Assembly: GCF_032191835.1 (NCBI RefSeq) | Contig: NC_083237.1 | Location: 24,180,001-24,244,000 of the forward strand | Length of the DNA: 64,000 bases | Direction: 5' to 3' | Source: Heteronotia binoei | Lineage: Eukaryota | In this document: piece after piece, positions 29,001 through 61,500 of the stretch | Layout: every line of letters begins with the position of its first letter | Position numbering within the stretch: the first letter of the stretch is position 1 | The notes under the pieces: generated by a model | The model's input: the letters and a program-made list of their open reading frames with translations, nothing else | Told to the model about the DNA's origin: nothing | The model's database searches: none | Translations under genes and position numbers: made by a program

Positions 29001-29835
29001 CGTTGGTTGAATTAAATTTAAAGTATTCCTGTATTGAAGCTGTTATTTTTTCACATATCCCTTCATCTTGCAATAACAATTTATTCAATTTCCAATGATA
29101 TCCTTGCGTGTCATCATTTTGAGTGGAAAGTGTACATGTTACCCACGAATGGTCTGAGATTATGCGGGGGCCAATGTCTGCCTCTTGTATCTGATTGGCT
29201 AGCCTTTTAGTTATAAGAAGATAGTCAATTCTGGTATGAATTTTATGTAAACTAGAATAGTAAGTGTATTGTTTAACTTCCGGGTTCAATAAACGCCATA
29301 TGTCTACCAAATTAAATGACTCAATCATATTTGATAATTCAGTGCTTTTTGTTGCTTTTTTTCCTGTTTTGTGTGTTTTGTCCATTGTAGGGTCCATTAT
29401 ATAATTTAGATCTGCCCCAATAATGGTTTCACCAATTTGAAATTCTGCTAGGAGATTAAGAGTGGCCTTTATGAATTTTTTCTTGTTTACGTTTGGGGCA
29501 TATAGGGATGCTACTGTAAGTGGCTGACCTTCTATTTCCCCTCTGACAAAAATATAATGACCCTTAGGATCCGACTTTATTTTTTGGCAATGAAAAGGTA
29601 CTGATTTTGAGAACAGAATTGCTACACCTCTGGATTTTGAAGTCCCTGCAGCCAAATAACTTTGAGTAAACCAATTGGAGGATAACAGTTTTTCATTAGC
29701 ATTTTTTAGATGTGTCTCCTGAAGACATACAATGTTTGCCTTTTCCTTTTGCATAGAGTTAAGAAGCCTTTTGCGTTTTACAATGTTATTAAGACCTCTA
29801 CAGTTCCAACTAAGAAGTTTGTACATATGTGCCAT
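26005..29835 (-). pseudogene. L1 ORF2 (APE endonuclease, RT, C-terminal Cys region) with one in-frame TAA at 28462-28464
   Basis: SWNCRGLN, CLQETH, RIDY, SDH; then KAPGRDG, YRPISVLN, DAEKAFD, GTRQGCPLSP, FADD; both ORF halves are in the same frame. Confidence 0.95.
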
Positions 29836-32669: not shown

Positions 32670-34393
32670 CTCTCTCGGTCCGATCTATGGCAGTTTGATT
32701 TAATGCTGGGAAAGTGGGAGCCCGCTCAAAAGTATGCGTCCGCCATTGTCAAGCGACGCCCCGCCCCCCCAATCATATTTTTTATTCAACTCCTCAGCAG
32801 TTTTCAATTCTATTTTGCCACTTTGTATTTTTAGTAATTGATTGTATGACAACCCTCTCTCTTCACTGGTTTCAGCTGTTATTTTTATTACTTCTGCTGG
32901 CACTATCCATAATGGCTTTCTCTCATCACCATATTTCTTATACTTCATCCATGTATTTAACAAATTATTTCTGATATAATGGTGAGAAAAAAACCATCCA
33001 TCTTTTTCTTCCCATAGTACATATAAGCATGCCAGCCAAATTTATTTCCATGAGCTTCCAACATTAAAAGTTTTTTATTTAACAGCGTCATCCAGTCTTT
33101 TATCTATACTAAGCAAACTGCATCATGATATAGTCTTAAATCTGGTAGCTGGAATCCTCCTCTCTTTTTAGCATCTGTTAAAATTTTCATTTTAATCCTT
33201 GGTTTCTTCCCAGCCCATACAAATTCTGAAATCTTCCTTTGCCATTTATTAAATTGTTTGCTGTCTTTCACAATCGGAATGGTTTGAAACAAATACATTA
33301 TTCTTGGCAGAATATTCATCTTAATTGCAGCTATTCTGCCCAGCAATGACAGATTAAGTTTATTCCATTTCACCATATCTTCATCCATCTTATGCCATAG
33401 CTTTTCATAGTTATTTTTGAACAAATCAATATTCCTCATTGTTATCTCCAAGCCCAAATACTTTACTTTAGAAGTAACTTCACATCCCGTCAGTCTCTGC
33501 AATTCCTTTCGTTTATTTACTTGCATGTTTTTACATAAAAATTTCGATTTTTCTTTATTAACATAAAGTCCTGCCAGCTCTCCATATTCTTGTATCTTGG
33601 CTAACAGCAAAGGTATTACTTGTATAGGATTTTCAGCTATAAACATTATATCATCAAACGCTCTATATTTATAAGTAAATCCTCTAATTTTCAGCCCTTC
33701 TATTTTTTTATCATCTAATATTTGCATCAGCAAAATTTCAAGAGTTGTTATAAACAACAATGGTGAAAGCGGACAACCTTGTCTTGTACCTTTACTGATC
33801 ATCATATCCTCTGTGAGGTCTGCATTTATACACAACTTTGCTCGCTGTTCCATATATATTGCTTTTATCATTCTTATGAAGTGTTCTCCAAGTTCTATCT
33901 TTTCCATTACTGCAAACATAAAGTCCCAGTTCAAATTATCAGATGCTTTCTCTGCATCCGCAAAAAATAATGTGACTTCCTTTTCTGGATGTTTTTCATA
34001 GTATTCTATAATATTTACAGCTGTTCTTATATTGTCTCTTGTTTGCCTTTTAGGGAGAAATCCTGCTTGATCTTCCTTTATGAAGTTAATCAAATATTGT
34101 TTAAGTCGTTCTGCCAAGATTCTTGTATATATCTTATAATCATTATTTAATAATGAAATTGGTCTGTAGTTCTGTACGTTCGTAACATCTCTATCTTCCT
34201 TGGGGGTCAACGAAATTACAGCTTCTTTCCAAGTGTTTGGTATTTTTCCTTTTATTCTTATCATATTCATCAATTTTTGCAGTGTTGGTACTAATTCTAC
34301 TTTAAAGGTTTTGAAAAATTTAGCCGTATATCCATCTGGCCCAGGTGCCTTTCCCATTTTCATTGCATTAATTGCTGCTTCAATTTCAATTTT

Positions 34394-34833
34394 TGTCAAG
34401 CATTGTCTATTTCTTTATTATTATAGTTACCAAAGTATAGAAATGTTATTAACCATGAATTGAGTCTATGTACATCAAAGTAAAGAGCCCCCTTTTTGTT
34501 CCTTTTGCTTTTACTAACAAATTCAGGAATGTACTCTTTGAAGATAAAACCTCCTGGGACTAATTCCCATGCCAGCAAGGCTGGAACCCAGGATGAGCTG
34601 ACTGCAGTAGAGATAAGGAAGTTACAGTGAGAAATTTCACACGTGAATGTAGAACTGTTTAGAGAATGTAGAATTGTTGATAGAACCTTTGATGTGCCAT
34701 CTTTAAGTATGCATTTTACTGTTACACTGTATCAGTTCCAATTCCTAGCTCATCTGAGCCACATGGATTATCAATAAACCAAACTTTGTTTCAAAATTCA
34801 AGGACTGGTTACTTTGAGATCTAATGCTTGACA
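34394..34833 (+). repeat. 5' LTR
   Basis: TG...CA with 11-bp terminal inverted repeat TGTCAAGCATT; AATAAA at about 34772; 6 substitutions against the 3' LTR. Confidence 0.97.
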
Positions 34834-34888: not shown

Positions 34889-36371
34889 ATGACTGAAAAA
34901 GGGCCGGATAACAGAGAACCTATTGATCCATTCGAAGGAGTAGAGGTGAAGACCGCCCCCCTCCGGCACATTGTTGGGGCTCGGAGAACTGGGGGGGGTA
35001 CAACAGTTGTTCATCACCCCTTGGAAGTGGGAGCCACGTATGTCTACCACCCTGATGGACGAGGCACCAGCATGCCATGAAATCATCCTTACGAGACCCG
35101 GGCGAGGTGATAAAGGCGGCGGAAACCCCGGTGATAGAAGGGAGGAGAGCCCTTGTCGAGATGAGGATGAACGGGGTGGCCCACGGCCTGATGACGATCG
35201 TGCTGGTGGGTCTGAGTTGGAGGGAGAAGATGAGAGCCCCCCAAAAGAGACAGACATCCTAAAGACAGTGAGGGGCGAGATGACCACCATGGTAAGGGAA
35301 CTAAGGGATGAAATCCAAGTGAACGCCACCTTCATGGCGCGAGAGATGCAGAGGCAGATTGAACGACTGCTGATGCAGGACTTCGAGAGAGCTCCTCCGG
35401 CTCCATCCGCAGTACCAGCCCTGCAAGTGCCACCAGCGGCACCAGCACCAGCGGGGCCGCCAGCCCCGCGACCCCCACTCCTGGGACTACGGGACTACGG
35501 GAGGGGCAGAGAACTGGATGCCACTTTCGATGGGGATCCCGAGGAAGTGGAGTACTTCACCATCCAAGCGAATAGCTACATGCATTACTTGGGGAACACC
35601 TTCCCTGATGACTTCAGCCGGGTGGATTACCTCGGGTCCAAGCTGAAGGGAGCAGCCAAAAGATGGTATGTGAGTCTATACGAGACAAGGGGGCCAGAGC
35701 TCGACACCGTAGCTGGGTTCCTGCAAGCCCTATTGACACAGTACGAAGACCCCCTTCAAGAGACTAGAGCCATCACGGCCTTGCGCGACATGCAACAGGG
35801 GGCAAAATCGGTGAGAGAATACGTGGCCGACTTCAGGGCACAATCCTCCAAAGTTCGGGGTTGGAGCAAGATGATGAAGATTGAGGCATTCCAAAGAGGG
35901 CTGAATGCGAGTCTATTGAATCGGGCCCTGCAGCAAGCCCACCCCACCACTCTCGTGGGCTTGGTACAGCTGGCAGGGGAGGTAGAGACCAACATGAAAC
36001 AAGTGGCCCTACAACGCCAACTGCATCAGGGAGGTAAGGGGGGATGAGAGGCTCAGTCGGGGGCTAAAGCAGATGGGAAGAAGGGAGCGACCCAGGGGGG
36101 AGCCACCAAGACCCCTCCGGTGCGCAAATGCTTCCGCTGTGTTGACCCAAATCACCTGGCAGCCAATTGCCCCGAGAAACCTCGAGCCCCTCCCCTGTCT
36201 CCAAAGCCGACCGGGACGGGCCCCAAGAAGACTTCGACCAAACCCAAGGAGTCGGTTCAGGGAAGCACCGCAACCTCGATGGTGCTAGACGAGGATACTA
36301 TAATTCTAGATGACTTGAGTGAAGAGTCGTGGGAGATGGAGTCGGCGGGAAATGAGAGCGACCTGCACTGA
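34889..36371 (+). pseudogene. Gypsy gag with CCHC zinc knuckle; one probable frameshift (about 35075) and one in-frame TGA (36045-36047)
   Basis: TFDGDPEEVEYF, capsid-like helices, CFRCVDPNHLAANC in frame after the stop. Confidence 0.88.
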
Positions 36372-36399
36372 GAGGTGCCGGGAGGCAGGTCGTGGATCT

Positions 36400-39300
36400 A
36401 ACTGCACCATTGCGGGTGAGAATAACTGGATCTTTGTTTTTTGTACCATTGACTTTGTTGAACCATAAGCTCAAACGCTTTATTCATGCCCGGGCCCTAA
36501 TAGACTCAGGGTGCACGCAGGAAATTATCACCCCAAAATTAGTGGGTGCATTGGGACTAGTGTGAAAACTCCTTCCCCACCCGATCCAAGTTGAGCAAAT
36601 GGACGGGTCGGAAATGAGAGGGGAACCGTGTGTGGAGGAAGCTCAGGGAGTACCGGTGGGGATAGAAAACCATTGAGACTTAGATATGTTCGTGATCGCC
36701 CCCTCCTCCTCCTTCGACGTAGTGTTGGGAGTCGGATGGTTAGCCAAGCATCAACCGGACATACAATGGGGGGATCAAACCATAGACTTTAACGACAGAA
36801 GGTGCAAACATCATCATTGGCTAGAGGAATGAGGACCGAACCCTCCTCCCAGAAATGAAAAGATGTGTGTATCCGTAGAGGAGGTCCAAACGATCCCCAG
36901 AGAATATAGAGACCTGAGGGGGGTGTTCAGCGAGGAGGAGGCGAATGAGCTTCCCCTGTATCGAAGCACCGATTGCGCTATCGAGCTGATCCGCGGACAG
37001 GAGCTGCCTAAAGCTAAACTATACTCCATGGGGTGGGCCGAGAAAGCCGAGCTGAGAAAATTCATAGACAAAAACCTCAGGAGAGGCTTCATTAGACTGG
37101 CCACTTCCCCGCATGCGGCTCCAGTACTGTTTTGGAAAAAGAAGGACGGGAGCCTCAGGCTTTGCACTGACTTTCGTGGGATAAATGGGATTTCCATGTC
37201 CAACGCCTATCCCATTCCCCTGATCAAAGATCTGTTAAGTACAGTGTCCGAGGGATCCATTTTCATTAAGTTGGATCTGAGGTATGTGTACTTTAGAATA
37301 CGGATTAAAGAGGGGGATGAGTGGAAGACTGCCTTCAACACTCCAATGGGGCAGTTTGAATACCTGGTGATGCCGTTTGGATTACAAGGGGCTCCAGGGG
37401 TGTTTATGAACTTTATAAATGAAGTCCTGAGAGAGTACTTGTACAAGGGGGTGGTAGTGTACCTGGATTACATCATTATTTACTCAAAAGACATGGTGTC
37501 CCATGTGCAATTAGTGAGGAAGGTGCTCACTACCCTGTACAAAAACAAGTTGTATGCCAAACTGTCCAAATGCGAATTCCATCAAACAGAGTTGGACTAT
37601 TTGGGGTTCAGAGTGTCCATGAAGGGGCTGGCCGTAGACCCAGCCAAAATACAAGCAGTGCTAGACTTGGAACCCCTAAGGACACGTAGACAGCTACAGT
37701 CTTTCCTCGGGTTCGCAAATTTCTACAGAAACTTCATTCAGGGGTTTGCCCAGGTGATGTTACCCCTGACAGACTTACTTAAGACTAGGGGGAAGGGTCC
37801 CGAAGCGAAAAAACCGGGGGCGAAACTAATTTGGACTCCTGCCTGTCAAAAAGCGTTTGAAAAGCTCAAGCGGTTGTTTACAAGCGAACCAGTGTTAACC
37901 CATCCAGATGAGCTTAAGCCTTTTGTGGTCCAGTGCGACGCCTCCGATGTGGCCGTCGGAGCAATATTAATGCAGAGAGACTCGGAAGGGAGGTTATGGC
38001 CGTGTGCTTACATTTCCAAAAATTTTTCCCAGGAACGGCACAACTGGTCGGTGTGGGACAAAGAGGCGTTTGCAGTGACTTTCGCACTAAAGACATGGAG
38101 GTCTTGGCTGAAGGGGGCGAGAGTGCCATTTGAAATTTGGACAGATCACAAAAATTTAGAGGCACTGATGGGGCGTAGGAAACTAACAGAAAAGCAAATC
38201 TGGTGGGCAGGGTTCTTTGCAAAATTCGACTTCACCCTGAGGCACATCCCCGGGTCGAAGAATTTCTTGGCCAATGCTCTATCTCGATTGCCCCAACACG
38301 AGAGCCAAAAGGAGGAGGTAGTGGATTCTATCATCCCTCCCAGTGCCCTAGCGGGCGCAGTGACCACCCGCTTGGGGAGGAAAAAAGAAATGCTGGAACC
38401 GTGGGGGGGGGGGGCAAAAGACTGATTGAGGAAACTGAATGGGAGGGAGAAGGAAGGCCCGAAGGACTGATAAAGAGGGCCGGGGGGTTTTGGTACCATG
38501 ATGAAAAATTGTATGTTCCAAAGACCCTGAGGCAAGAAGTGTTACAACATTGTCACTGTAATAAATTATCTGGACACTTCGGGTACTTGAAAACACTGCA
38601 CCTAGTCAACAGACAATTTTGGTGGCTGCAAATGAAAAAGGACATTTCCGAGTTTGTGAGTACTTGCCCAGTGTGTATAATGGCAAAGAAACAAGGTGGG
38701 AAACCCCCTGGTCTTCTCCAGCCCACCCCTACAGCGGAACACCCTTGGTCTGTAGTCTCTATGGATTTTATAGTGTAGTTGCCGGCCTCCCAAGGTTGAA
38801 CCGTAATATTGGTGACAGTAGATACTTTCTCAAAACAGGCGCATTTCATTCCTTGCAAGAAATTGCCTACAGCAAAGAAGCTAGCCTTCTTGTTTTTCCA
38901 ACATGTGGTTAAAGTCCACTCCTTCCCGGATAAGGTAATTAGCAGCCGCGGCCCACAGTTCATTGCCAACTTCTGATGGGAGCTCTGTAAACTAACAGGT
39001 ATGGAGCAAGGATTAAGCTCCGCCTATCACCTGCAGACGGCCGGGCAGACGGAACGTGTAAACACACTTCTGGAATAGTACTTGCTGTGCTTTGTGAACT
39101 ATCAGCAGACCAACTGGGTGGAGCTACTGCCGTTTGCGGAGTATGGGTACAACAATAGCCTCCATAGCTCAACTAAAGCAACCCCTTTCAAGATTGTGAA
39201 CGGCTATGAAGGAAAGCCGTTTCCCCTACTACCCAGTAGCAAGGGAACCAATCCACCTACCTCTTGTCAACAGTGGTGGGAAACTTTGGGAAAAGGGTGG

Positions 39301-39830
39301 GCCATCATCCAGGAGAACCTAGAAGCAGCCAACCGGGACTATAAAGCTCAATATGACAAAAAAACACCCCCCCCCCCGAGTGGGACTTTAAAGTAGGAGA
39401 AACTGTGTTCTTGTCTACCAAAAACTTACCCTTACCACAAACCTCCAGGAAGCTTGCTTATAAATACCTCGGGCCATTCAAAATCAAAAGGGTAATAAAC
39501 AAGGTGACAGTGGAGTTAGAGTTACCAAAATTGTTTAGTAAAATTCACCCTGTTTTCCATTGCAGCCTTCTTCTGCGAGATCCGGGGGCTACGAGCTGGC
39601 ACCCCCGCCCACCAGAGCCCAAACCTATTCAGGTAAAGGGTCAGAGTCACCATGATGTTCAGGAGATACTGGATGTTAAAGAAAAAAGAGGGGTGTTGTA
39701 TTATCTAGTTCGTTGAAAGTATTTCCCCCCCAGTTGTGATGAATGTGTGAAATCATCCGATCTCCGAGCCCCCCTCCTTCTGAAAAGATTTTACCTACTG
39801 CACCCAGTCAAACCCCGAGCAAGAGCTTAG
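36400..39830 (+). pseudogene. Gypsy pol: protease, RT, RNase H, integrase, chromodomain; multiple stops and frameshifts
   Basis: LIDSG (36497), LRLCTDFR, MPFGL, YLDY in place of YLDD, CDAS, DHKNL, HHCC finger, SMDF, chromodomain VQEILDV...YYLVR*K. Start boundary approximate. Confidence 0.92.
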
Positions 39831-43398: not shown

Positions 43399-43580
43399 CA
43401 GGGTTTTTTTTTTGTAGCAGGAACTCCTTTGCATATTAGGCCACACCCCCTGATGTAGCCAATCCTCCAAGAGCTTACAGTAGGCCCTATAAGAAGAACC
43501 CTGTAAGCTCTTGGAGAATTGGCTACGTCAGGGGTGTGTGGCCTAATTTTCAAATGATTCCTGCTACAAAAAAAGCCCTG
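43399..43580. mobile_element. Palindromic hAT MITE (called MITE-A here)
   Basis: Nearly the whole element is an inverted repeat (CAGGG...CCCTG); 8-bp TSD AAAATTAC. Confidence 0.9.
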
Positions 43581-46806: not shown

Positions 46807-46938
46807 ATGTCTGCCTGCCGGCTTGGAAAAGTGATCCCCAAGACAAGCATCCTGTTCTTGTGTGACATGCAGGAGAAATTCCGACCAAACATCAGCTACT
46901 TCCCTCAGATTGTATCTGTCGCGGCTCGAATGTTGAAG
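46807..46938 (+). CDS. ISOC2: Isochorismatase domain-containing 2, first coding exon (exon begins 46780)
   Basis: [44 protein letters not shown]; aag|gtataa donor, phase 0. Confidence 0.95.
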
Positions 46939-47279
46939 GTATAAGACACGCAGGGGGGCTGTGCTTTTGGGAATAGGGCGGAGGGCAGATCCAGAATACT
47001 GGAGGGAAGAGAGTCTGTTACGACATTCACAGGAATTATTAGTTAATTAAAATTGAATCAGGGGTATTTTGTGTCTCAGTGTTCCCTCTAAACTGAGTTA
47101 GTGTGAGGTAGTTCACAGTTTTTTAGCCTCCAGCTCTTATAGCTCAGGAAAAATGGCCCCAGAGCAAACTAATTTATGCAGTAGCTCACAACTTTAATGC
47201 CAGTAGCTCATGAAGTAGAATTTTTGCACACAAGACTCCACAGCTTAGAGGGAACATCCTGGCAATTGTGTAGAGGTGC

Positions 47280-48870
47280 AGAGCCAATTGCCTGACTACT
47301 CTGGTTAAGTAGAACAAACTGAAACTGAACCCTGACAAAGCAGAGGTAATTCTGGTTTGGAAAATGGAAGTCTTGAAGGATATTGTGCTTCCCACTTTCA
47401 GTGGGATTCAGTGACGGTTGAAAGCCATGAGCTTATACTGGACCCAGGGTTACTGCTGGAGAACCACTGCAAAAAAAAAAAAAGCTTTCTTCAAACTTAG
47501 TTAAGCCACCTAGATCCATGCCACAGTAATACCAAGACTAGACTACTGTAATGCATGCCACATAGGTCTCCCCTTGAAGTCAACTCAGAGGTTGGTGCAG
47601 AATGTTACAGCTTGGTTATTATCAGAAGCTAAAGCATGCAAGTTACACCTGTTCTGGAGTCACTCCATTGGCTGCCCATCAGTTCACTTCAAGGTTTTAG
47701 CCATCATCTATGAAGTCCTTTGTGGTCTTGGACTGTCGTATCTGCAGGACCACCTCTCTTCCTATGCTTTGCCGTGACAACTTTGCTCATCTGAGCTGGA
47801 CCTTCTGCAGGTACCACCCTGTAAATTGTCAGAATCAGGGCTTTTTTTTGTAGCAGGAACTCTTTTGCATATTAGGCCACACCCCTCTTATGTAGCCAAT
47901 CCTACCAAGAGTTTACAGGGCTCTTCTTACAGGGCCTACTGTAAGCTCTTGGAGGATTAGCTACATCAGGGGTATGTGGCCTAATATGCAAAGGAGTTCC
48001 TGCTACAAAAAAAGCCCTGGGCAAGATCAGCCATCAACTGAACATGTGGATTATCTGTTGGGGCCCCCACCCTGTGGAATGACCTGCCTAAGGAGGTCAG
48101 GATGGCTTCCACACTTTAGGCATTCTGTAAACAACATAAAACAGAAATGTTCAGGAGAACATGTTTGTAAATGTGGTCGGGCTATGTTAGAATGGTTCAG
48201 GAGATGTTTCAAAGAAGGCAACAGGTCTATGGACTTTACCTCTGTGTATGATATGTGTTATCTGTTGCTGCATACATTATCTTGTTCTTAGGGCACTGTA
48301 TTTCTGTTTACGTAATGCCATTTACTGCTTCATTACCTGTCATGTCATATAGTTATTTATATATTACCCTGTTTTTGTCCCCAGGGGGACCCACAATCTC
48401 TTATAACATTCTTCCCTCCTTCCCGTCTCACCCAGACCTGGCCATAGTAATCCATGCAACTGTCACCTCCAGATTAGACTGCTGTAACTCACTCTACGAA
48501 GGGCTACTCTTGAGACTGACCCATAAACTCCAACTGGTCCACAATGCGGCAGTGCCAGGTCCTTACCAGGACCCTACAAATGGCATGCATTCGACAAGTG
48601 CTGGACAAGCTGCACTGGCTTTCAACCGAGTACTGGATCTGGTTCAAAGTGGTGATAACCTTTAAGGCCTTAAATGGTCTAGGACCAACATACATTTGGG
48701 ACTGCCTCTCCTGGTGTAAAGAAGAACTTGCTGGTGGTCCCTGGCCCAAGAGACAGGGCTTTAGTTGCCCTGGTGGAACTCTCTGCCGAGTTAACACCTG
48801 TGCCCTGTGGGAGCTAGTGCAATTCTACAGAACCTGCAAGGCAGAGATGTTCTACCAGGCATTTGGTTGA
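47280..48870 (+). mobile_element. Two decayed L2 LINE 3' fragments
   Basis: KLNPDK..., (S/P)RLD(Y/C)CN..., HKLQLVHNAA, LHWL..RI.FK remnants. Boundaries approximate. Confidence 0.7.
47836..48020. mobile_element. Palindromic hAT MITE-A, second intact copy, inserted in L2
   Basis: Same palindrome as 43399-43580; decayed TSD (5/8 match). Confidence 0.85.
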
Positions 48871-50299
48871 GGACAGCGATGGTTTCCATCAGTCTGGTGC
48901 TCCTATCTTTCTGCCTCCCACCCACAGGGCAGTGGCTCCATCAGTGACCTTAACTTCATCTTGTTAGGTGTTGTGTTTTGTTGGATTTTACTATTTTTAT
49001 TGTTAATTTATGTATGCATATTTGTATTACTGTGTGCCGCCTTGAGCCTTGTTTCCCAGGGAAGGGTGGTCTAAAAATTGAACCTAATAAATAAAGTAAA
49101 CAATAACCCTGTGAAGTAGGTCAGGCTGAGAGCATGTGACTGGCCCAAAGTTGCCCAGCAAGCATCCAGGTTAGAGTGTGGATTCAAACCTGGGTCTTCC
49201 AAATCGTAGTCTGACAGCAGGCTGGGTCTCAGTCAGAACACTTTGTTCTGATTTCTGCCATCCCATCCTGATTACATCTCTTATTCGATGTCTCATCCTT
49301 TATATTGCATTGACCTCTGTGTAATTCACCTCAGTTCTCAGGGAGAAAAGTGGGCTATAAATAAAGTTGATTACTATAATATTAAAATCATCTTCCAATG
49401 TATTGGGGGGTTTATTTGGCATGGATGCTGTCCAACAGGTGCCTATAGTAAGTGGAGTCTTGTGAGCAAAAATTCTACTTTGTGAGCTACTGGCATTAAA
49501 GTTGTGAGCTACTGCATAAACTAGTTTGCTCCGGGGCTATCCCTCCTGTGCTAAGAAAAATGTGTGAACTGGAGGCTAAAAAACTGTAAGCTAGCTCATG
49601 CTAACTCAGAGGGAACATTGCTTACAATTGTTGCATCAGAATCTATACACATCTGTAAGAATCATATTATTTTCCGTGCTGGAAGGCAGTCTGGGTGCCT
49701 AGCAGATGCTTTTACCATTTGCTACAAAAACTGGCAAAATGATTTGACAAGAGAAGGGTTAGAACTGAAGAAAAATGACATTGGTACTGGAGAAAGTTGA
49801 AAGCTATCGATAGCCCTGACCTCTGTGAATTTGTCTACTCCCCTTTTAAAGCCTTATACGTTGGCAGCTGTGACCATACCCTGTGGCGGTGAGTTCCACA
49901 GTTTAACTGTGCACTCTGTGAAGAAACACTTCCTTTTTTCTGTCCTGAATCTCCCACCTGTCAGCTCTCCCCACACCAGGCATAACTTTATGGACTTCTA
50001 TCATGTCTCCCTTTCTCGTCTTTTTTCTAAGCTTAATTGCCCAAAGCATTTTAGTAGGCCTCTTAGGGCAGCCACTCTAGCCCTCTGATCATTTTGGAGT
50101 ACCTTGTGGGCCGGCCTCAACTGCTGTAGCAGGACTCCTTTGCATATTAGGCCACACACCCCTGATGTAACCAATCCTCCAAGAGCCTACTGTAAGCTCA
50201 GGGGGTAGGCTTTCCAACCCCCCCGCCCTGGTGGGGGACCCCTGAATTTGCAGCCTTCTCCCCTGCTCTCCAAAAATCTGGAAGCGGGGGGGGACGGTG

Positions 50300-50907
50300 C
50301 TTCCCCCTCACAGCGCCCTGCTGCCACAGCAACACCAGCACCGCCACCACCAGCGCCGCCGGCCCAGGCACAGGCACAGGCAGCAGCCGCCATTTCTACA
50401 GGCTGCCTGAGAAGAGCAGCAGAGGGTCTCCTCTCCCTCCGTCCCACCAGGCCCCAGTCACTCTGCAATTCATCCTCCAGTATGAACTACAGACTCCAGC
50501 ATTCTGCGTGACTTTAAGGCACGCCGGTCTATCTTGCGCTGTCGTAATCCACTTCGGACCACACACCCCAGCCTTCCTTGTGCCAACCCACCCTTATCCC
50601 CTGCCTAGATGCATTCTGGGACTCGTAGTTCTGCGCTTCCCGACGAAGTTTCTCTCTTCTGTCGCCCATGAGGGAGGAAAAGTTTCCACACTCCTGTCAC
50701 TTGCCGGGCCAGGCAGTTGCTAAGGGCAACCACGCGCCGACCAATAGCAAAGGCGCTCTCCAGAGCGGAAGGCGCGAAGAGCAGCGCGACGGGCCAATGG
50801 CACGCTTGGCAGGGGCCTTAAGGGCGGAGCGCGAGTCTCCTTGAGCCTCGTGCTGCTTTGCAGCGTAGTCGGGTGCTGCAGGTGACCGACCGACTGACCT
50901 CGGGGCG
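50300..50907. promoter_or_regulatory. CpG-island bidirectional-type promoter inside ISOC2 intron 2
   Basis: ZNF143-type motifs 50484-50504 and 50611-50631 (GAACTACGAGTCCCAGAATGC on -), RFX X-box GTTGCTAAGGGCAAC 50716-50730, CCAAT at 50741 and 50794, YY1-like GCCGCCATTT at about 50386. Confidence 0.8.
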
Positions 50908-50991
50908 ATGGGAGGCGGCAGTAGCGCTTCGCGGAGAGTCACCTTTGAGGCGGACGAGAACGACAACGTGACGGTGGTGAAGGGTGTGCGG
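50908..50991 (+). CDS. CHCHD3: CHCHD3/MIC19-like first coding exon; downstream exons not found in the window
   Basis: MGGGSSASRRVTFEADENDNVTVVKGVR against recalled human MGGTTSTRRVTFEADENENITVVKGIR; cgg|gtgagc donor at the matching phase-0 position. Whether it is the orthologue, a paralogue or a copy is unresolved. Confidence 0.8.
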
Positions 50992-51033
50992 GTGAGCAGT
51001 GGGGAGGCTCCCCTTCAGCACCTCCTGTCCCCT

Positions 51034-51515
51034 TTGGGTTGCCAGTCCCCAGGTGGGGGCAGGGGATCCCCCGGTTTGGACCCCCCCCCCCGCTTCAGGG
51101 TCATCAGAAAGTGGGGGGGGGGAGGGAAAGGTCTGCTGGCCACTCATTATTCCCTATGGAGACTGATTCCCATAGGGTATAATGGAGAAGGATCTGTGGG
51201 TGTCTGGGGCTCTGGAGGGCTGTTTTTTGAGGTAGAGGCACCACATTTGCAGCATAGCATCCGATGGCTCTCCCCAAAATACCCTCCAGGTTTCAAAAGG
51301 ATTGGACCGGTGGGTCTAATTCTAGGAGCCCCCAAAGAAGGTGTCCCTATCCTTCATTATTTCCAATGGAAGGAAGGCACTTAAAATGATGTACGGTCCC
51401 TTTAAATGTGATGGCTAGAACTCCCTTTGTAGTTCAATCATGTTTGTCACACCCTTGCTTCTGACTCCACCCCCAAAGTCCCCAGATATTTCTTGAATTG
51501 GACTTGGCAACCCTA
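51034..51515. mobile_element. hAT MITE, TAGGGTTGCCA family (called MITE-B here)
   Basis: TIRs TTGGGTTGCCA / TGGCAACCCTA; homologous in reverse to 60110-60525; no TSD of its own (TGTCCCCT vs TCCAGGAG). Confidence 0.8.
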
Positions 51516-51872
51516 TCCAGGAGGATTGGCTACATCAGGGGTGTGTGGCCATTGTGTCTCTGACTGTGGATATGGGTAAGGGAAGGAATCCTGTGCTACC
51601 ATCAGCTCTTTGGAGATGGGATCAGAATGGAAGATAGACAGGTATATCGCTTGCTAGTTCTAGAAAGCTGCTTGTCTCTAACTGTGTCCCCAAGACCTAC
51701 AAGTCTTAGCCGTCCCATAGCAGCACCACAGCTGGGCACAGGGGGGCAGTATAATATCGATTTCTGAAAATAACACATGCTTCCTGCTATCTATGAAGCC
51801 TGCTTCCCACTCTCCGAAAGTCAAGAATCCTGCTTCCTCTCAGACAAGTCTCGCTCTCTCCTCCTCTTGCAG

Positions 51873-52085
51873 GTCGCCAAAGCTCTTGAAATCCCAACGG
51901 TGGTGACTGAACAATACCCCAAAGGTCTAGGCCCAACAGTGCCGGAGCTGGGTGCAGAAGGACTTCGGAAATACTCCAAGACGTGTTTCAGCATGCTCAT
52001 CCCTGAGGTGGAGAAAGAGATGGCGGCTGTCCCCAGCCTGAAGTCTGTGCTGCTGTGTGGCATTGAGACACAGGCCTGCATCATG
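51873..52085 (+). CDS. ISOC2: ISOC2 second coding exon
   Basis: [26 protein letters not shown]...KTCFSM...[13 protein letters not shown]; canonical AG/GT, phase 0/0. Confidence 0.96.
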
Positions 52086-52307
52086 GTAGGGGCCGAGAGG
52101 CCTGCCACTGGGACTGGGGGGGTGGGGTACAAGGCCTGAGGCCAGGGAAGATGGGCCCATGGCTTTGCCTGGTGAGTCAGCTGCAGAGAAGCCCCACAGC
52201 TCTGGCCCTTTATTGAGTGTCCCCATTCCCCACCCCCCAAGCCAGTAGGAGGCCTTAATGGGCACCCTGGGCTTGATCAATATTTCCACATTCTTGAAAA
52301 CCTAGAA

Positions 52308-52589
52308 CAAGGGTGGCTAAGCTTGTTTAACGTAAGAGCCACATAGAATGATTGTCAGATGTCTGGGAGCCACAAGGAAGGCAGTCAGGCAAATAGATGG
52401 GGAGAGAGGTGGAAAGAAAGCAACTTTAACTTTAAAAGCATTTTCCAAACCGCCAGCTGGCTTGGCTTGGAGAACTGGTTTAAAGAGAGAAATGCCTTCT
52501 CCAAGACAGGGCAGTGGGGGCTTTGAGAGCCACACAATATGTGTAAAAGAGCCACCTGTGGCTCCCAAACTGCAGTTTGGCCACCCCTG
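52308..52589. mobile_element. hAT MITE
   Basis: TIR CAAGGGTGGCTAA / TTGGCCACCCCTG; perfect 8-bp TSD ACCTAGAA. Confidence 0.9.
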
Positions 52590-52912
52590 ACCTAGAAAAT
52601 AAGGCACTTTCAATTTTACTTCTTCTTGTTGTCCCCTCAGACTGGAAAGGAGGAAGGAAGCCACAGTAATTGCATTCACCCCTGGGCCTTAAGATGTGGG
52701 AAATGTCTCGCTCTGGGCGCCACCAAATGCACAGAAGTCAGGAGGGGGTGAGTGGCCATAAAGGCCCCTTGTGAGTGGAAAGAGAGAGAGAGACCTGGCT
52801 TGTCTGGGCAGCCGCTACTCCTGCCAGAGGGTGGATCACAGCAGGAGCAAAGTCAGGGTCCCGCTCCTTTCTTCTTTGGGCACAACACAACCCTTCCTTT
52901 CTCTGCACACAG

Positions 52913-52983
52913 AGCACAGCGCTGGATGTGATGGAACGAGGACTGGATGTTCATGTTGTGGTGGACGCCTGCTCCTCTCGCAG
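52913..52983 (+). CDS. ISOC2: ISOC2 third coding exon
   Basis: STALDVMERGLDVHVVVDACSSR(S); 71 nt, phase 0/2. Confidence 0.95.
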
Positions 52984-53098
52984 GTAACTAGTGGGGCAGA
53001 AAGGGTTCAGTGTCTGGGGCTGCAGGAGTGCTGCCTTTCTTCCTTCTTTCTGTCCATCAATGTTGTCTTTCATTTCCCTCTCTGCCTCCTTATTGCAG

Positions 53099-53216
53099 CC
53101 AGGTGGACAGGCTTGTGGCCTTGTCTCGGTTACGTCAGAGCGGGGCTTTCCTTACGACCAGCGAAGGCCTTATCCTGCAGCTTGTCAGAGATTCGGCACA
53201 CCCCTGTTTCCGAGAG
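53099..53216 (+). CDS. ISOC2: ISOC2 fourth coding exon
   Basis: [39 protein letters not shown]; 118 nt, phase 2/0. Confidence 0.95.
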
Positions 53217-53653
53217 GTAATTCTCTGGTCTGCCTTGGAGACCTGGGTCTGCCCCCCAAACCCTCCGAATTTTCTATAACATGTAGCAAAGTCTGGCAGC
53301 CTCATACATACAGACTTCTGCAAGCATTTTTCCCAAGATAACCGGGGGGGGGGGGGGGGGTTGAGCAGGGATGCAGTTCTGGCTGGCTTTGCATCAGGGG
53401 TGTGGCCTAATAGTCAAATTAGTTCCTGCCAGGCTTTTTTTACAAAAAAAGCCCTGAGGATAACATTCCTTTGTGTCATGGGAGCATCTGGGTTGCTTTT
53501 CATTGCTGTGGGTTGAGGACAAGGGAAAGAGCCCACAGTGTAAAATCGGAGTATTTTTACTTTCTTTTTACTTTAATCCTAGCAAGCTTACAAATTGGGG
53601 GCCTGTTAACACACTGGAACTTCTCACTTCTCAGGTGAGATTTCCTCAATGAT

Positions 53654-55463
53654 TTTGAGTTCCCCGAGTATGAAGAAACACCTGCCTTGTCAGTGGAGGG
53701 CCTGTTTTGGGATTTTATGATTGGCACACTCCACCCACTTATTATTAGATATTGTATTAGATAAAGCGATGTGCTGGGAGGTTGTGAGGAATTACGGGGG
53801 AGAGAGGTCCCCTCCTCTGGGATTCTGTAAGATCTCAGGGCTTGAGCAGGGCAACTTCCCCATCTCCTCCCTCCAATAAATAACAATTTGGACGAGGAGA
53901 ATAAATGATTGAGGAAATCTCACCTGATCCCAAACCTCCAGGACACTATAAAGTTTTTAAAGGCTTGAGCAAACTAATTACCTCATCCCACTCCCCCCCT
54001 TTCGTTTGACTAACCCCTCAATTTGTTATGCCCCCCAGAGGGGGGTGAGCATACTCTCTTCTCATGGTACTGGAAGTTTGGGGGAAGAGGGAGAATTTTT
54101 CTTACTGACAAAGTAACGTTTTTGTGTACAGGTAGGGAGTTCCCTGCCCCATGGGCAGAAACTTCTGTGTTGTCATTACGGGGCTCTGTTTCACCCCACC
54201 AATTGCATTCAACCACCAACTATGAGAGCCAGTTTGGTGTAGTGGTTAAGTGCGTGGATGGACTTTTATCTGGGAGCACCGGGTTTGATTCCCCACTCCT
54301 CCACTTGTACGTGCTGGAATGTCCTTGGGTCAGCCATAGCTCTGGCAGAGGTTGTCCTTGAAAAGGCAGCTTTTGGAAGAGCTCTCTCAGCCCCACCCAC
54401 CTCAACAGGATGTCTGTTGTGGGGGAGGAAGATAAAGGAGATTGTGAGTCACTCTGTGATTCGGAGTGGAGGATGGGATATATATCCAATATCATCATCT
54501 TCTTCTTTGCTACTAGAGAGAACACTTTGGGGTCACTATCTGTGAAGGATCACAGGGAGGAGAAATAACTGGGGAAATTGCTCCCTGCTAGCCTTACGGA
54601 TACTAACGTTTACAGCTTCATCCCCCCTGCTGCCATTCAGGGATGCCAATCTCCAGGTGGGGCCTGACAATCTCACACTAAGTTTGGTGTAGTGGCTAAG
54701 TGTGCGGACTCTTATCTAGGAGAACCGGGTTTGATTCCTCACTCCTCCACTTGCTGCTGCTGGAATGGCCTTGGGTTAGCCATAGTTCTGGTAAAGGTTG
54801 TCCTTGAAAGAGCAGCTGCTGTGAGAGCTCTCTCAGCCCCACCCACTTCACGGGGTGTCTGTTGTGGGGGAAGAAGATAAAGGAGATTGTAAGCCACTTT
54901 GAATCTCTAATTCAGAGAGAAGGGCGGGGTATAAATCTGCAGTCTTCTTCACTATTCCAGCAGACTTCTCAATAACAGATATCAGTTCCTCTGGAGAAAA
55001 GGGCTACTTTGGAGGGTAGGCTCTGTGGCTTTATTCTCCACTGAAGACCCTCCCCAATTCCTGCCGTCCTCAGGCTCCACCCCCAAAATCTCCGGGAATT
55101 CCCCAACTGAAAGCTAGTAGCCCTTCCAAATGTTCAGCCTTCATCCGTGTTCCATGTTGGCTTGTTACCTAGTCCAGGGAGGGGATGGGGGTACAGTCAT
55201 ACTGTTCTGCACATCTTTGAGTTCCCCGAGTATGAAGAAACACCTGCCTTGTCAGTGGAGGGCCTGTTTTGGGATTTTATGATTGGCACACTCCACCCAC
55301 TTATTATTAGATATTGTATTAGATAAAGCGATGTGCTGGGAGGTTGTGAGGAATTACGGGGGAGAGAGACAGGGTTTGGAAACGGGTCCCCTCCTCCGGG
55401 ATTCCGTAAGATCTCAGGGCTTGAGCAGAGCAACTTCCCCATCTCCTCCCTCCAATAAATAAC
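53654..55463 (+). repeat. Near-identical direct repeat pair, 53654-53884 and 55216-55463
   Basis: About 230 bp shared; the second copy has an extra segment of about 16 bp (ACAGGGTTTGGAAACG). Confidence 0.9.
54224..54950 (+). mobile_element. Two tandem tRNA-derived SINEs with L2-like tails (54224-54509 and 54681-54950)
   Basis: TTTGGTGTAGTGG A box, GGGTTTGATTCC B box, CTT-repeat tails; the two copies align along their length. Confidence 0.8.
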
Positions 55464-56559
55464 TCTCAACCAGGGCTGGATTAACAAATAGGCCAGATAG
55501 GCACCGGCCTAAGGGCCCTCACGCCTTTAGGGGTCCTGGGCTTGCTTTCCCTCCTGCCCTGGTTTTCCCTGGTTGTTGTTGTTTGTTTTGTGTAATAAAA
55601 CTGGTTTATTAAAATTGTTGGTTGGTAAAATTAAAAACGTATTAGGAGATAATTTGCGAGGGGCTCCCAAGATTTCAACTGCCTAGGGGCCTCCAAAGGG
55701 TTTAATCTGGCACTGCTCTCAACTGGTTATATCCCTGCTCGTTTCTCACCAGCATTTGCTTGTGGGGTGGGGGCAACAAAAGTTATGTTTTTTCTGCACG
55801 TTTAGGGAATCTCTCCACTGTGTAAAAAGGCCTATGTCTCTGTGGTAGGCCTGTCCTCCCCTCCTCTTGTGCTTGGCATGTGGATCAGCTGCTTTACTGT
55901 TAAATGCGGCAATAAAATAATGAAACTGAGGGCGGGCACTTCTCGTGATGGACTGAATTCTCTCACAAACTTGCAGTGACCCGAGAAGGACTCACAGTGG
56001 TAATTAGTGGGATTTGGCAGAAACATCCAGGCTTTTTGTACACAGAAGGTAAAGATTGCAGATAACAGCTGGGAAGGCCTGTCTGCTCTGCTCTAGGGAG
56101 AGCTATGGCTGAACTTGCAAGTGTTCCTCTGGGCTCCTAGGGTTTGTTAACATCTGCGAGGAGTGATTCGGAAGCTGAAGGGGGTTCTGAAAAATGCACA
56201 CACACACACACACACCCCCCGCAAGATCAGGCATTCCTGACACCTCCCCTTTAGTACATGAACAAGTTGATCGAGTTTTGCAAGTAATTAGTGAAACAAT
56301 TTTTAATTGTCTGCTTAATCTGGAAACAAATGTGTGTGTGTGGGTGGGGGGGACCCATCTTGCTTCTTGTTAAAGTAGGCAATTGCAAACCCCTGGGCAG
56401 CAGATGCTTTCTTAGAAGAGGCACCCTTCTGATCTCCGCACACAAACAAATTCTTCTTCCGTAGAGGTGCCTGCTATGGTAAATGTGGGTATCATCTGAA
56501 AACAAAGAAAATAAGCTTTCCCCCTCAGATGTACTACTTTTTGTGTGCAAGTCTATGCA

Positions 56560-56895
56560 GATGAAATGGGTGGTTTTTAAACAGAGGCTAAATCGCCATC
56601 TGATAGTAATGCTGATTCTGTGAACTTAGGCAGATCATGAGAAGGAGGGCAGGAAGGGTTGCATCCGTGCTTAGTTCTCGTGGCTCTTTCTTACATACCC
56701 AGGGAAATGCTGTTTGCCACTTTGAGGTCAGGCAGCAATTTTTCTCCAGGCCGGTTCTTGTTATTGTTGTTTGCCATCTTCTGGGCTTGGAGCAGGGGTC
56801 ACTGGGGTATGTGTAGTGGTGAGGTACTTGTGAGCTTCCTGCATTGTGCAGGGGGCTGGACTAGATGACCCTGGAGATCTGTTCCAACTATGATT
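56560..56895 (+). mobile_element. CR1 3' UTR fragment
   Basis: Ends GGGCTGGACTAGATGACCCTGGAGATCTGTTCCAACTATGATT, a typical CR1 terminus. Confidence 0.7.
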
Positions 56896-57317
56896 GTTTA
56901 ATCCATGGAAAGTATTTAGAGTCAGTTACAGATCCCTGAGCCTAAGGTGGGGGAAGACAGAATTTGAGGCTAAAGGAAGAGGTGAACGGGAGCAAATGGA
57001 GTTTCAGACATTCTGACATTCCAATGAACCTCTCCAGTAGTGCATGGCAAATTCAGGAACAACAGATACTTCAGATCATGTAAATACCTGCCAGCTATTT
57101 AAGCTCACTTCTGGAAAAATTGCAGCTGATGCCCAGGGAGCTCAGAGTAGCATGTGCATTTTTCCAACCCCCTTTTATCCTCATCATAACAACCCTGTAA
57201 GGTAGATCATGTTAAGAGAGCAACTGGCTGAAGTTCATCCAGTCACGGCAAAGTGAGGATCTGAACCTGGGCCTCACCCTGGTGTGATAACTTGTGCCGT
57301 CTCTCTCTCTTTTTCAG

Positions 57318-57395
57318 ATCCAGAAACTGATTATGGACCCTGTCCCAGACAGTGGCCTCCTTCCCTTCCTGACAGCACCAAGCCCCCAGTTTTGA
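57318..57395 (+). CDS. ISOC2: ISOC2 last coding exon
   Basis: IQKLIMDPVPDSGLLPFLTAPSPQF*; ttttcag acceptor; completes a 203-aa protein. Confidence 0.93.
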   Translation: MQKLIMDPVPDSGLLPFLTAPSPQF

Positions 57396-58580: not shown

Positions 58581-61500
58581 TCTGGTGTAATTTAGTACAC
58601 CTTCCGGTGATGTCAGGGGAGGGTGGGATATAAATTTGATAAAATAAATGTCAGGGGTGCATGGCATATGCAAGTGAATTGTGCTAATGAGCTCCAGCAC
58701 CTCTTTTTCTACTAAATGACCCCTGCTTGTTTACATTTTGTGTTCACTTGGGTAGTGCTATGGTTGGATGCTCAGGAATTAGAATCCTTTTCCCACACAC
58801 ATTTGGTTACAGATTTAGGAAAAGAGCATTGAAAGGTTGGTGGTTAGAAGGAAAGAAGGCGTGTGAGTTGCTGAGAAGAAGGAACTGAGCATGGCAAAGG
58901 AACAACAGGGACCTGGCCAGAGGTCCTCCACTGTGACCTGTAAAAGCTTCCACCTAATACTCTTTACTGAATTCCTAACTAGACTCACAGCCATGAGGGT
59001 TAGCAATTTGGTTTTGGGGGAGAGCAAGGAACTGGTGTTGCATAGCAGCTGAGAGGACACGTTGTGGCCCAGAGGGTATAAATCTTGCCCCTGCCACAAG
59101 CACTTTAGGGTTTTAGGAAAGCCATTCTCTCTTGGTCTCATCCTGCCCCCATCTCTAGCAAGATGGTACTGGGTTATCTCACAGGCTTGTTGTGAGAGCT
59201 ATGGTATGTTGTCTTATGTGAACCACTTGGAACACAAAGTGAATTCAGACAAATGTTACATATTATTAAGTCCTCAGGATTCCAGAACATCAGCCAGTTT
59301 CTGCACTGATGTTCTTCCTGTTCCACACTGTGTGGCCTAAAGGCACGTGAGTGTGCTGCGGCAGACCCACACTGCAGGGACACGAAGGCCAGAGGCTCTC
59401 CCTCTTTGTTTAATTCTTTCATTTGTACCACACTCTTCTCCCTCGTGGGATGCAGAGCAGCTTAAAGCATTCTCCCCTTCTCCATTCCCACACAACAGCC
59501 CGGCGAGGCAAGTTAGACTGCAAGCTTCAAGGCAGTCCAGGGAATCAAACATGGTTTCTCAAATCTGAGTCTGGCCAGACTGTGGCTCAGGAACCACATG
59601 TGGCTCTTTGGCACATGTTGTGTGGCTCTTGAAGCCCCCCCTGCCCTATTGGCAGGCAGCTTGGAGAAGGCATTTAAAGTTAAAGTTGCTTTCTTTCTTC
59701 CTCATCTATTTCCTTCCTTCCAACTGTCAAACATCTGATGCTCATGTCTTATAGCTCTCAAACATCTGACATTTATTAAGATTGGCCACCCCTGCTCTAA
59801 CCATTATACAATGTTGTTGTTGCCCCTTTCCCTCAGCAATTTCATTAGGGTTGCTAAGTCCAACTCAAGAAATATCTGGGGACTTTAGAGCCAGGAGCAT
59901 GGTTGTGATCAAGACCTTTTTGGCAGAAAAATCCCAGCAGGAATTCATTTGCATATTAGGCCACACCCCCTGACACCACCATTGTTTGATGCAGGGCTTT
60001 TTATAGAAAATCCCAGCAGGAACTCATTTGCATGTTAGGCCACACTCTCTGAGATCAAGCCAGCCAGAACTGTGTTCCTCTGCATTCCTTCTCAAAAAAA
60101 AAAAAGCCCTGGCTGTGATAAGCATGACTGAATGCTGAAGTGAGTTCTGGCCATTCCATTTGAAGAGACCATGTTCCTTTTAAATGCCTTCCCTCCATTG
60201 GAAGTAATGGAGAATGGGGGCACCTTCTTTGGGGCCTCATAGAATTGGATCTCCTGGTCTAATTATTTTAAAACTTGGGGAGTTTTCTGAGAGGCACCAG
60301 ATGCTATACTGAAAATTTGGTGCCTCTACCTCAAAAAACAGGCCCTCCTGAGACTACCAATTGATCGATTTTCCATTATACCCCATGGGGATTGGTCCAT
60401 AGGGTATAATGGATCGTCCAGCAGCTGTTCCTACCCCCACCCCACGTTTTGATAGCCCTGAAGTGGGGGAGGGCCTCCAAACCAGGAGATCCCCTGCCCC
60501 CAACTGGGGATTGGCAACCCTAATTTCATTCAAGAGGTATACTGCCTTTGAACATGCTCAGATGCTATTCCTAAGAAACACAGATGGACTGAGCCTCTTT
60601 TTAAAAACGATTTAAGCCTGCACCCCTCACCACAGCCCAGGAGTTCCATAAGGTTAATTGCATAAGTCATTTCTTTTTTTCTCACCTGGCCAATAGTCTG
60701 CAAGTGAACCCCTTCATCTGTTAGTTTCTGTTATGCAGCCATTAAAGATGGGAGAGCAGACCAGGCCCTTTTGTGTTTTCATCCTTCTCCCATCTCCCTG
60801 GTCCTTTGGGATTGCTAGACCTAAATTCTCAGGGGGGGGGTTGTGAACTATTTTAAGAGCTGTATGGAATAAGGACAATTGCAGAGTATGCAGCTTTTCC
60901 CACTGCAGCACGGAGATGGGGGGAAATCTGCCCTTGGCAGAAGAATCCCTTCCCACGTGGTGCGCAAGAGACAGCTCTGCACCCAGTAGCCCCAGTCTGA
61001 GGACAGATTTGGAAAAAGAATGTACTTCTTTCAATTCTGCATTATTCTAGGAGAGGCTTAGTACAGTACAATGGTTAGAATCCAGACCAGGGCTGTGGAG
61101 ACCTGAATTCAAATCCTTACTCTGTCGTGAGGCTTACTGGGTGACCTTGGACCAGCCCTTTGCCTTAACTAGCTCCCAAGGATTATTGTAAGGAGAGGAG
61201 AACACCCCCTCACCACCTTGTGTCACCCTGATGGCCTGACAAAAGTGGCAGCTATCTTTTTGGGCTTCAGGTGAGCGTTCCCTTTCTAGCCCTGTGACCA
61301 CATACATTAGGCTCAGTAAGAGCCTGCATTGGTTCTGAACATTTTACTGTTAAGAGTAGTACTATGTGGGATCAGGCTGAAGGCTGTATCCGAAAGAGCC
61401 ATATAATGGAAAGGAAAGGAGTAGCACAGGAATCATTTCTGGCAAAGAGAGCGTAGCTGCTCCGTTATGTTGCTGAAATGAATATGCCCCTTTCTTGTAG

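Follow-up and report, generated by a model that had tools for sequence, protein, structure and literature searches.

The question raised by a 64,000-nucleotide stretch of the gecko Heteronotia binoei genome (RefSeq assembly GCF_032191835.1, contig NC_083237.1, positions 24,180,001 to 24,244,000 of the forward strand; hereafter the window, with positions counted from its first letter) is how the CpG-island promoter and first coding exon of one gene, CHCHD3 (encoding MIC19), came to stand in an intron of another, ISOC2, between the ends of hAT-like miniature inverted-repeat transposable elements (MITEs). We are highly confident that the segment is an extra, DNA-level duplicate of the CHCHD3 5′ end. 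With transposon termini at its ends, a host-derived cargo and outgroups that lack it, as in Pack-TIRs (TIR, terminal inverted repeat), it reads as a single-locus, lineage-specific capture of the Pack-hAT type in H. binoei. The steps by which it moved are told with more reserve.

The CHCHD3 cargo and its parent gene

The segment is an insert of 1,310 bp (50206-51515) in a copy of a palindromic element, MITE-A. It has three parts: a diverged terminus that we call B′, the CHCHD3 cargo and a complete copy of a second element, MITE-B. Together with the MITE-A arms and the bases at the left junction (TSD, target-site duplication), the features from left to right are:

50125 to 50197, no strand assigned: left arm of MITE-A, palindromic and of hAT type; its outer ~14 bp and 23-bp central loop are gone
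50198 to 50205, no strand assigned: eight extra bases, TCAGGGGG, between MITE-A and B′; left TSD copy or junction filler, 5/8 against 51516-51523
50206 to 50300, + strand: B′ (TAGGCTTTCCA...), a diverged left terminus of MITE-B type that bounds the insert on the left
50301 to 50907, + strand: captured CHCHD3/MIC19 upstream region, a CpG-island promoter
50908 to 50991, + strand: copy of the coding part of CHCHD3/MIC19 exon 1, 28 codons, phase 0
50992 to 51033, + strand: portion of CHCHD3 intron 1, 42 bp, starting with the donor GTGAGC
51034 to 51515, + strand: complete MITE-B, hAT-like, 482 bp, TIR TAGGGTTGCCA; its right terminus bounds the insert on the right
51516 to 51550, no strand assigned: right arm of MITE-A; its first eight bases, TCCAGGAG, are the putative right TSD copy and its outer ~45 bp are gone

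The peptide of the exon-1 copy matches MIC19/CHCHD3 of squamates and crocodilians only (phmmer against 5.8 billion sequences, E 9e-8 to 3e-5) and shares 27 of its 28 residues with MIC19 of H. binoei itself (P0001/P0130). It bears the N-terminal pattern MG...RRVTFEADEN..VVKG.R and closes at a conserved phase-0 boundary, VKGVR/LSEN in P0001, with which the GTGAGC at 50992 coincides. Upstream of it the ratio of observed to expected CpG (o/e) is 0.8-0.97 over 50501-50907 and 0.97 over 50701-50907, with 0.71 overall, against 0.15-0.27 in the MITE-B and surrounding intron that flank the cargo. By the criterion of o/e ≥0.6, GC ≥55% and ≥500 bp, 50301-51200 is one of six CpG-island-like windows in the 64 kb; of the remaining five, four overlap a DIRS-like retrotransposon at 9344-15265. 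The promoter elements recognised are two CCAAT boxes (50741, 50794) and a GC box (50822); of two further motifs, near 50484 and 50614, one is clear and the other weaker, and both we take to be ZNF143/Staf-like and regard as a lead only. The earlier note on this DNA, made from its letters alone, had described the cargo as a CpG-island promoter with a CHCHD3-type exon 1, a description that agrees with an o/e of up to 0.97, the 27/28 identity and the GT donor.

Other searches of the region returned little. Pfam gave no hits for the 28-residue exon alone, the antisense open reading frames (ORFs) or the upstream ORFs, and a protein search with the 42-residue read-through ORF found no match. Rfam found no RNA gene over 49900-51900, just two sub-threshold miRNA-like hits in G/C runs of MITE-B, and a motif search found no further CHCHD3 exons in the window. 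Because promoter, splice donor and intron sequence are all present, the cargo is a DNA-level copy; a retrocopy was rejected on these same features.

The parent differs slightly from the copy. True MIC19 (XP_060101996/7; P0130/P0001) is encoded by a 476-kb gene on a 133.44-Mb record of the same assembly, while ISOC2 lies on a record of 68.09 Mb, so that the two are on different chromosomes. The true protein starts MGGGGSAS... and the window copy MGGGSSAS... (G5 versus S5). Read data consisted of contigs of coded RNA runs only, and these may stem from a different Heteronotia lineage, so that percentages from them are rough; H. binoei comprises several sexual and parthenogenetic lineages. The sole exon-1 contigs (runs X2 and X4) carry GGC at codon 5 (50920-50922), the true-gene version, where the window has AGT; two versions of exon 1 therefore exist. 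Run X2 also has a 252-nt contig that aligns with 50450-50707 at ~91%, and the duplicated tract reads as spanning at least 50450 to exon 1. In the reads the cargo appears to be low or single copy. The extra CHCHD3 copy proposed in the earlier note is thus matched by a separate annotated gene on another chromosome, whose exon 1 differs by one residue. The MIC19 gene ranges of H. binoei, Paroedura and Sphaerodactylus measure 273-476 kb, and no ISOC2 gene, nor any other second gene, was called within 10 kb of CHCHD3 in Paroedura or Sphaerodactylus.

As an observation on the promoter itself, the RNA library with the 252-nt contig over 50450-50707 has nothing over 50708-50888. It has the look of a transcript that runs divergently upstream from the true CHCHD3 promoter, in which case that promoter would be bidirectional.

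The split MITE-A, the insert ends and the outgroup introns

A BLAST search of 50100-51600 against the window aligned 50125-50197 with the intact MITE-A copies at 43399-43580 and 47836-48019 (90-92% identity, E 5e-23 and 2e-22) and 51520-51550 with the same copies at 94-97% identity. The two arms are mutual 31-nt inverted repeats, 97% complementary (30/31), the left partner being 50150-50180. The bases that flank the insert, ..CCTACTGTAAGC and TCTTGGAGGATTGG.., adjoin each other in intact MITE-A copies, which read ..CCTACTGTAAGC TCTTGGAG GATTGG.. across the point of interruption. That a MITE-A had been cut in two, its parts normally contiguous, was already proposed from the letters alone, and alignment to the copies at 43399 and 47836 bears it out; the description needs amending in that the 23-bp central loop of this copy is missing too, as are its two outer termini, the latter loss being revealed by alignment with outgroup introns. 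MITE-A elements end in CAGGG...CCCTG, and the copy at 43399-43580 is flanked by a perfect 8/8 TSD (AAAATTAC). We also considered whether the whole 50113-51556 block could have been mobilised by MITE-A's own ends; this was ruled out, both of its termini being absent.

The insert itself begins and ends with MITE-B-type termini, as the earlier note had it. Exact matches to TAGGNTTNCCA number four in the 64 kb: two are the insert ends, TAGGCTTTCCA at 50206 and, on the reverse strand, TAGGGTTGCCA ending at 51515, and the remaining two are real termini of other elements. The left TAGGCTTTCCAA and the reverse complement of the right TAGGGTTGCCAA agree at 10 of 12 positions, in inverted orientation. 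Beyond the motif, B′ aligns collinearly with the opening ~100 bp of each of the two MITE-B copies (local alignment, z 3.6 and 4.6), with scores that 6 and 0 of 1000 dinucleotide shuffles reached, respectively. It is ~60% alike to the MITE-B left end and belongs to a different subfamily. Position 50257 within B′ is covered by 8-11 contigs in two RNA runs, which makes B′ part of a repeat family; no other BLAST-detectable copies were found in the window or in either outgroup locus.

At the other end, the inner MITE-B (77% identical to the copy at 59846-60522) has CHCHD3 intron as its left flank and MITE-A as its right. Its flanking 8-mers match at one position of eight, so that it has no TSD of its own, again as first noticed from the sequence. 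MITE-B therefore did not insert at its present position, and its right terminus coincides exactly with one rearrangement breakpoint. The alignment of a contig from a different genomic copy of MITE-B breaks off exactly at 51515, which identifies this position as a true family terminus. The right breakpoint thus falls exactly on a transposon terminus and the left one nearly so, within 8 nt. We read both breakpoints of the 1.31-kb segment, firmly, as the left-type and right-type termini of one hAT-like MITE group. Since a random fragment would not end on such termini, a hAT transposase, or an element that it had placed, defined the ends.

The hAT TIR consensus starts YARNG, and the termini of MITE-A, of MITE-B (TAGGG...CCCTA) and of B′ (TAGGC) all fit it. 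The families make 8-bp TSDs, a claim of the earlier note that three other copies in the window uphold: 8/8 at 43399-43580 (MITE-A), 8/8 at 59846-60522 (MITE-B) and 7/8 at 6250-6494. No hAT transposase gene with MITE-A, MITE-B or B′ termini was found in the 64-kb window. The terminus motif with which B′ begins heads other short MITEs at 6250-6494 and 20453-20612, and a single transposase probably served all MITEs that share it.

Some details of these relatives deserve mention in their own right. The element at 6250-6494 is a short hAT-like MITE whose 7/8 TSD reads GGTGCCTC/GGTGCTTC and whose left terminus is doubled in tandem, TAGAATTGCCA (6250) being followed by TAGGGTTGCCA (6294). The ~160-bp MITE at 20453-20612 has the ends TTGGGTTGCCA...GCCATCCCTA and a 5/8 TSD, and shares a TTGGG terminus variant with the inner MITE-B at 51034. 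The MITE-B copy at 59846-60522 is interrupted (~59910-60111) by two MITE-A-related CAGGGC...GCCCTG elements; nesting among the MITE-A and MITE-B families is common in the window.

Comparison with other geckos places the arrangement in time. The orthologous ISOC2 intron of Paroedura picta and Eublepharis macularius aligns up to window position 50112 and resumes at 51557-51622. In the place of 50113-51556 there are 58 bp in P. picta (L002 11046-11104) and 52 bp in E. macularius (L003 10992-11044), and no MITE-A, cargo or exon-1-like ORF was found in 24 kb of either outgroup locus. Because the two outgroup introns have 52-58 bp instead, the arrangement is lineage-specific, and its distribution dates it to after the split of the Heteronotia lineage from the Paroedura lineage. 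The earlier note had suggested looking for the empty site in related geckos: MITE-A and insert are both absent from the two examined, and a MITE-A without the insert is not among them. It had also named two observations that would speak against a capture, namely the segment at the same position in distant squamates and CHCHD3 exons downstream of it; the segment is absent from Paroedura and Eublepharis, and the window is without downstream CHCHD3 exons.

These results make it very improbable that the segment is an assembly artefact, or that it is the sole genuine CHCHD3 exon 1. In favour is that the contigs at hand, none clearly from the source individual, span neither junction. Against stand the S5 of the copy versus the annotated G5, the annotated 476-kb gene on another chromosome, the precision with which the MITE-A halves flank the insert, the lack of further CHCHD3 exons in the window and the outgroup ISOC2 introns that do not have the segment.

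Routes by which the segment may have moved

We tentatively prefer a composite origin, in which B′ and MITE-B flanked the promoter at the donor and moved with it as one unit (macrotransposition). A B′-type element or fragment would have lain upstream of the CHCHD3 promoter, with a MITE-B in intron 1, 42 bp from the start of that intron; using the outer left end of the left element with the right end of MITE-B, a hAT transposase would then have excised all between; the excised piece would have integrated into the MITE-A of the ISOC2 intron, close to the middle of the palindrome; and the donor site would have been mended from the sister chromatid or homologue. The composite model predicts, at the donor, a MITE-B with a TGTCCCCT-like half-TSD on its right. 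Two independent insertions around the CHCHD3 promoter are expected to yield different subfamilies, as seen in B′ and MITE-B (~60% alike), and this difference, along with the complete inner MITE-B without a TSD, is why the composite route fits naturally. Donor structure, transposase step and canonical integration are all steps that we infer.

A canonical integration should leave a TSD, and the earlier note had seen a decayed one of 8 bp in the outer 8-mers. The length fits the family: exactly 8 nt separate the last MITE-A base from the B′ terminus. The sequence is statistically neutral, neither supporting nor refuting a TSD. TCAGGGGG and TCCAGGAG match at five of eight positions, a level (≥5/8) that 3% of 8-mer pairs from the region reach by chance, whereas decay would bring a true TSD to ≥3 mismatches with a frequency of 0.04-3% if pairwise divergence is 2-9%, and of 20% if it is 20%. 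Of five other MITEs in the window, two likewise have 5/8 flanks.

The same junctions bear on an end-joining origin, in which a break at the centre of the MITE-A palindrome took up a free CHCHD3 piece, transposase-excised or random, by ligation and with no real TSD. The 23-bp deletion of the MITE-A loop, just 12 bp from the insertion point, is in keeping with this, as is the distribution of the mismatches between the 8-mers, which are concentrated at the junction, the arms being otherwise complementary at 30 of 31 positions. Ligation does not account for there being exactly eight unexplained bases at the left junction, the TSD length of the family, nor would a random fragment have both its ends on transposon termini; moreover, two ordinary MITEs in the window have 5/8 TSDs as well. 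We consider end joining unlikely.

Gap filling is a quite possible alternative. Here a B-type hAT MITE would have been resident in MITE-A, and an internal break in it would have been filled later with 0.73 kb copied from the 5′ region of CHCHD3 on another chromosome. The resident element would have had a B′ left end and a MITE-B-type right part, or a double left end as at 6250-6494; the break may have been made, for example, by transposase at the internal left terminus, with MITE-B homology in CHCHD3 intron 1 priming the copying. Such a history would leave end sequence identical to that of the composite model, and in animals it is the main source of single-copy Pack-TIRs (Tan et al. 2021, Nat Commun 12:4280, PMC8277862). 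It accords with a cargo that seems low-copy in the reads and with the cargo's right edge, which is exactly at the internal left terminus 51034, where a transposase would be expected to cut; the window also provides an element with two tandem left termini (6250, 6294), and double-ended elements of this kind could give a transposase an internal cutting site. On the other side, B′ and the MITE-B left end, ~60% alike, are unlike parts of one ordinary family member, and the other MITE-B copy lacks an additional left unit. Capture is reported to be biased in cis, towards nearby sequence (Tan et al. 2021, PMC8277862), whereas the parent gene here is on another chromosome. A resident element, too, should have left a clean TSD, so that 5/8 is problematic for this route as well.

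Returning to composite transposition, several points weigh against it. Its donor layout, with B′ upstream and MITE-B in intron 1, is a prediction. Most single-copy animal Pack-TIRs arise by gap filling that is independent of transposition (Tan et al. 2021, PMC8277862). The TSD of the insert is unproven, 5/8 being as likely by chance (3%) as by decay of a genuine duplication at ≤9% divergence. The left 8-mer resembles a TCAGGGG elsewhere in MITE-A, and given this likeness the left junction may be filler or a repair product. The recognisable terminus of B′ is just ~95 bp, truncated relative to MITE-B, and the loss of the MITE-A loop and both outer ends points to other rearrangements at the site. 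Finally, no piece spanning either junction (50197/50206, 51515/51516) was found among the contigs of the RNA runs, where the MITE parts attract thousands of contigs.

The ISOC2 host gene, possible activity and known systems

The host of the insert is a 4.9-kb ISOC2 intron 3′ of the first coding exon. The reference locus (L001: GCA_032191835.1, CM063339.1, 68.09 Mb) overlaps window positions 36807-64000 over 27,194 bases with 0 mismatches, and the protein built from the window exons is 100% identical to H. binoei ISOC2 (P0010). The exons are:

46807 to 46938, + strand: ISOC2 coding exon 1, 44 codons, phase-0 donor AAG/GTATAA, 100% match to P0010
51873 to 52085, + strand: ISOC2 coding exon 2, phase-0 acceptor, 100% match to P0010
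52913 to 52983, + strand: ISOC2 coding exon 3
53099 to 53216, + strand: ISOC2 coding exon 4
57318 to 57395, + strand: last ISOC2 coding exon, including the stop codon; the recorded gene range ends at L001 20589, which is window position 57395

An acceptor-like tract lies directly 5′ of the ISOC2 ATG, which makes a non-coding exon 1 upstream of it likely. The label of intron 2 given to the host intron in the earlier note is therefore plausible; what is observed is an intron after the first coding exon. The ISOC2 coding range measures 10.6 kb in H. binoei versus 4.0 kb in P. picta and 4.1 kb in E. macularius, an expansion due to intronic repeat insertions (46807-57395 versus L002 10001-13974 and L003 10001-14067). 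Neighbours common to H. binoei and Paroedura are a myosin heavy chain gene upstream and a bZIP_2 gene downstream.

The captured phase-0 donor lies 881 bp upstream of the phase-0 coding exon 2 of ISOC2, on the same strand and in frame, and a hypothetical ORF of the exon-1 copy joined to ISOC2 coding exons 2-5 is open over 187 codons. The copy could thus act as an alternative promoter and first exon for ISOC2. The full proposition, an unmethylated, active CpG island driving a gecko-specific chimera of 187 residues, MIC19(1-28)-ISOC2(45-203), and put in place by natural macrotransposition of two hAT MITEs, strikes us as improbable, if worth stating. Such a chimera would start with the myristoylation-type MGxxxS of MIC19 exon 1. 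Its isochorismatase fold would lack the initial 44 residues, and the protein would probably be unstable. The undecayed CpG island is a hint of hypomethylation in the germline, but is equally well explained by a young age. That H. binoei ISOC2 has a single annotated protein counts against activity, and no annotated MIC19-ISOC2 chimera was found among the database proteins sharing N-terminal words, where only MIC19 has this N-terminus. The exon-1 contigs of the RNA runs are of the true-gene version, and ISOC2 exons are uncovered in these runs, which thus have no power to see a splice from 50991 to 51873. Were the copy active, it would represent a dated, lineage-specific, in-frame planting of a housekeeping promoter inside another gene, and would bear on how alternative promoters and chimeric genes are born.

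Elsewhere in the window, other mobile elements are plentiful. A large retroelement at 9344-15265 (partial copy at 1-615) has three long open frames of 1017, 696 and 941 codons, the middle one with domains of reverse transcriptase (RT) and RNase H; the window opens with a second occurrence of the C-terminal portion of the third. By its domains it looks DIRS-like and was possibly active recently. On the minus strand, a long interspersed nuclear element (LINE) at 26008-29835 has frames of 457 codons for endonuclease and 792 codons for reverse transcriptase, both of them open, and looks young; a second RT fragment is found at 33107-34399. A Ty3/Gypsy-type long terminal repeat (LTR) retrotransposon occupies 34971-39716, with gag (Retrotrans_gag, Ty3 capsid), RT and RNase H domains and with ORF pieces that are integrase-like.

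Exon and promoter shuffling by DNA transposons is textbook matter in plants and, to our knowledge, has few well-dissected vertebrate examples. In maize, hAT transposase reportedly moves host DNA between the outer ends of linked Ac/Ds elements, with an 8-bp TSD (work associated with Dooner, Huang, Zhang and Peterson). That macrotransposition was seen experimentally with autonomous Ac, whereas here the donor layout is our reconstruction, MITEs take the place of Ac/Ds and no clean TSD is seen. Pack-MULEs (MULE, Mutator-like element) of rice and other plants and the Helitrons of vespertilionid bats likewise capture gene fragments, promoters and first exons at the DNA level, with the potential for chimeric transcripts. 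MULEs make a TSD of 9-11 bp and Helitrons capture by rolling-circle read-through; both are usually multicopy. They differ from the present hAT case in superfamily, in mechanism and in this usual multiplicity.

The closest counterparts are the animal Pack-TIRs. A survey of 100 animal genomes reported 370 of them, 208 being hAT, with primates and alligator among the carriers (Tan et al. 2021, PMC8277862). The earlier note's view that such captures are seldom documented in amniotes is to be tempered accordingly. The main text of that survey does not mention squamates ('lizard' and 'Anolis' occur 0 times). As in those elements, the segment described here is a host gene fragment between the termini of a non-autonomous TIR transposon; hAT is their commonest carrier (208/370), they are mostly single-copy and, as here, they often share the orientation of the host gene and are capable of forming chimeras (PMC8277862). 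The differences lie in the extent of the cargo, here a whole CpG-island promoter with first coding exon and donor, against a 291-bp fragment of the CAPSL 5′ untranslated region in the worked example of Tan et al.; in the two ends, which derive from different MITE subfamilies with a complete second MITE inside the unit; and in a parent gene on another chromosome (PMC8277862).

The kind of event is thus already known, amniotes included, and the present case is a clean reptile example of animal Pack-TIR/Pack-hAT capture, unusual for its cargo of promoter, exon and donor, its two-MITE ends, its trans-chromosomal parent and its in-frame, same-strand landing. Its anatomy is unusually legible, with a nested insertion, termini at both breakpoints, a complete cargo, a distant parent and outgroups without the arrangement, and the structure of the donor locus bears directly on the two models of how animal Pack-TIRs originate, composite transposition and gap filling.

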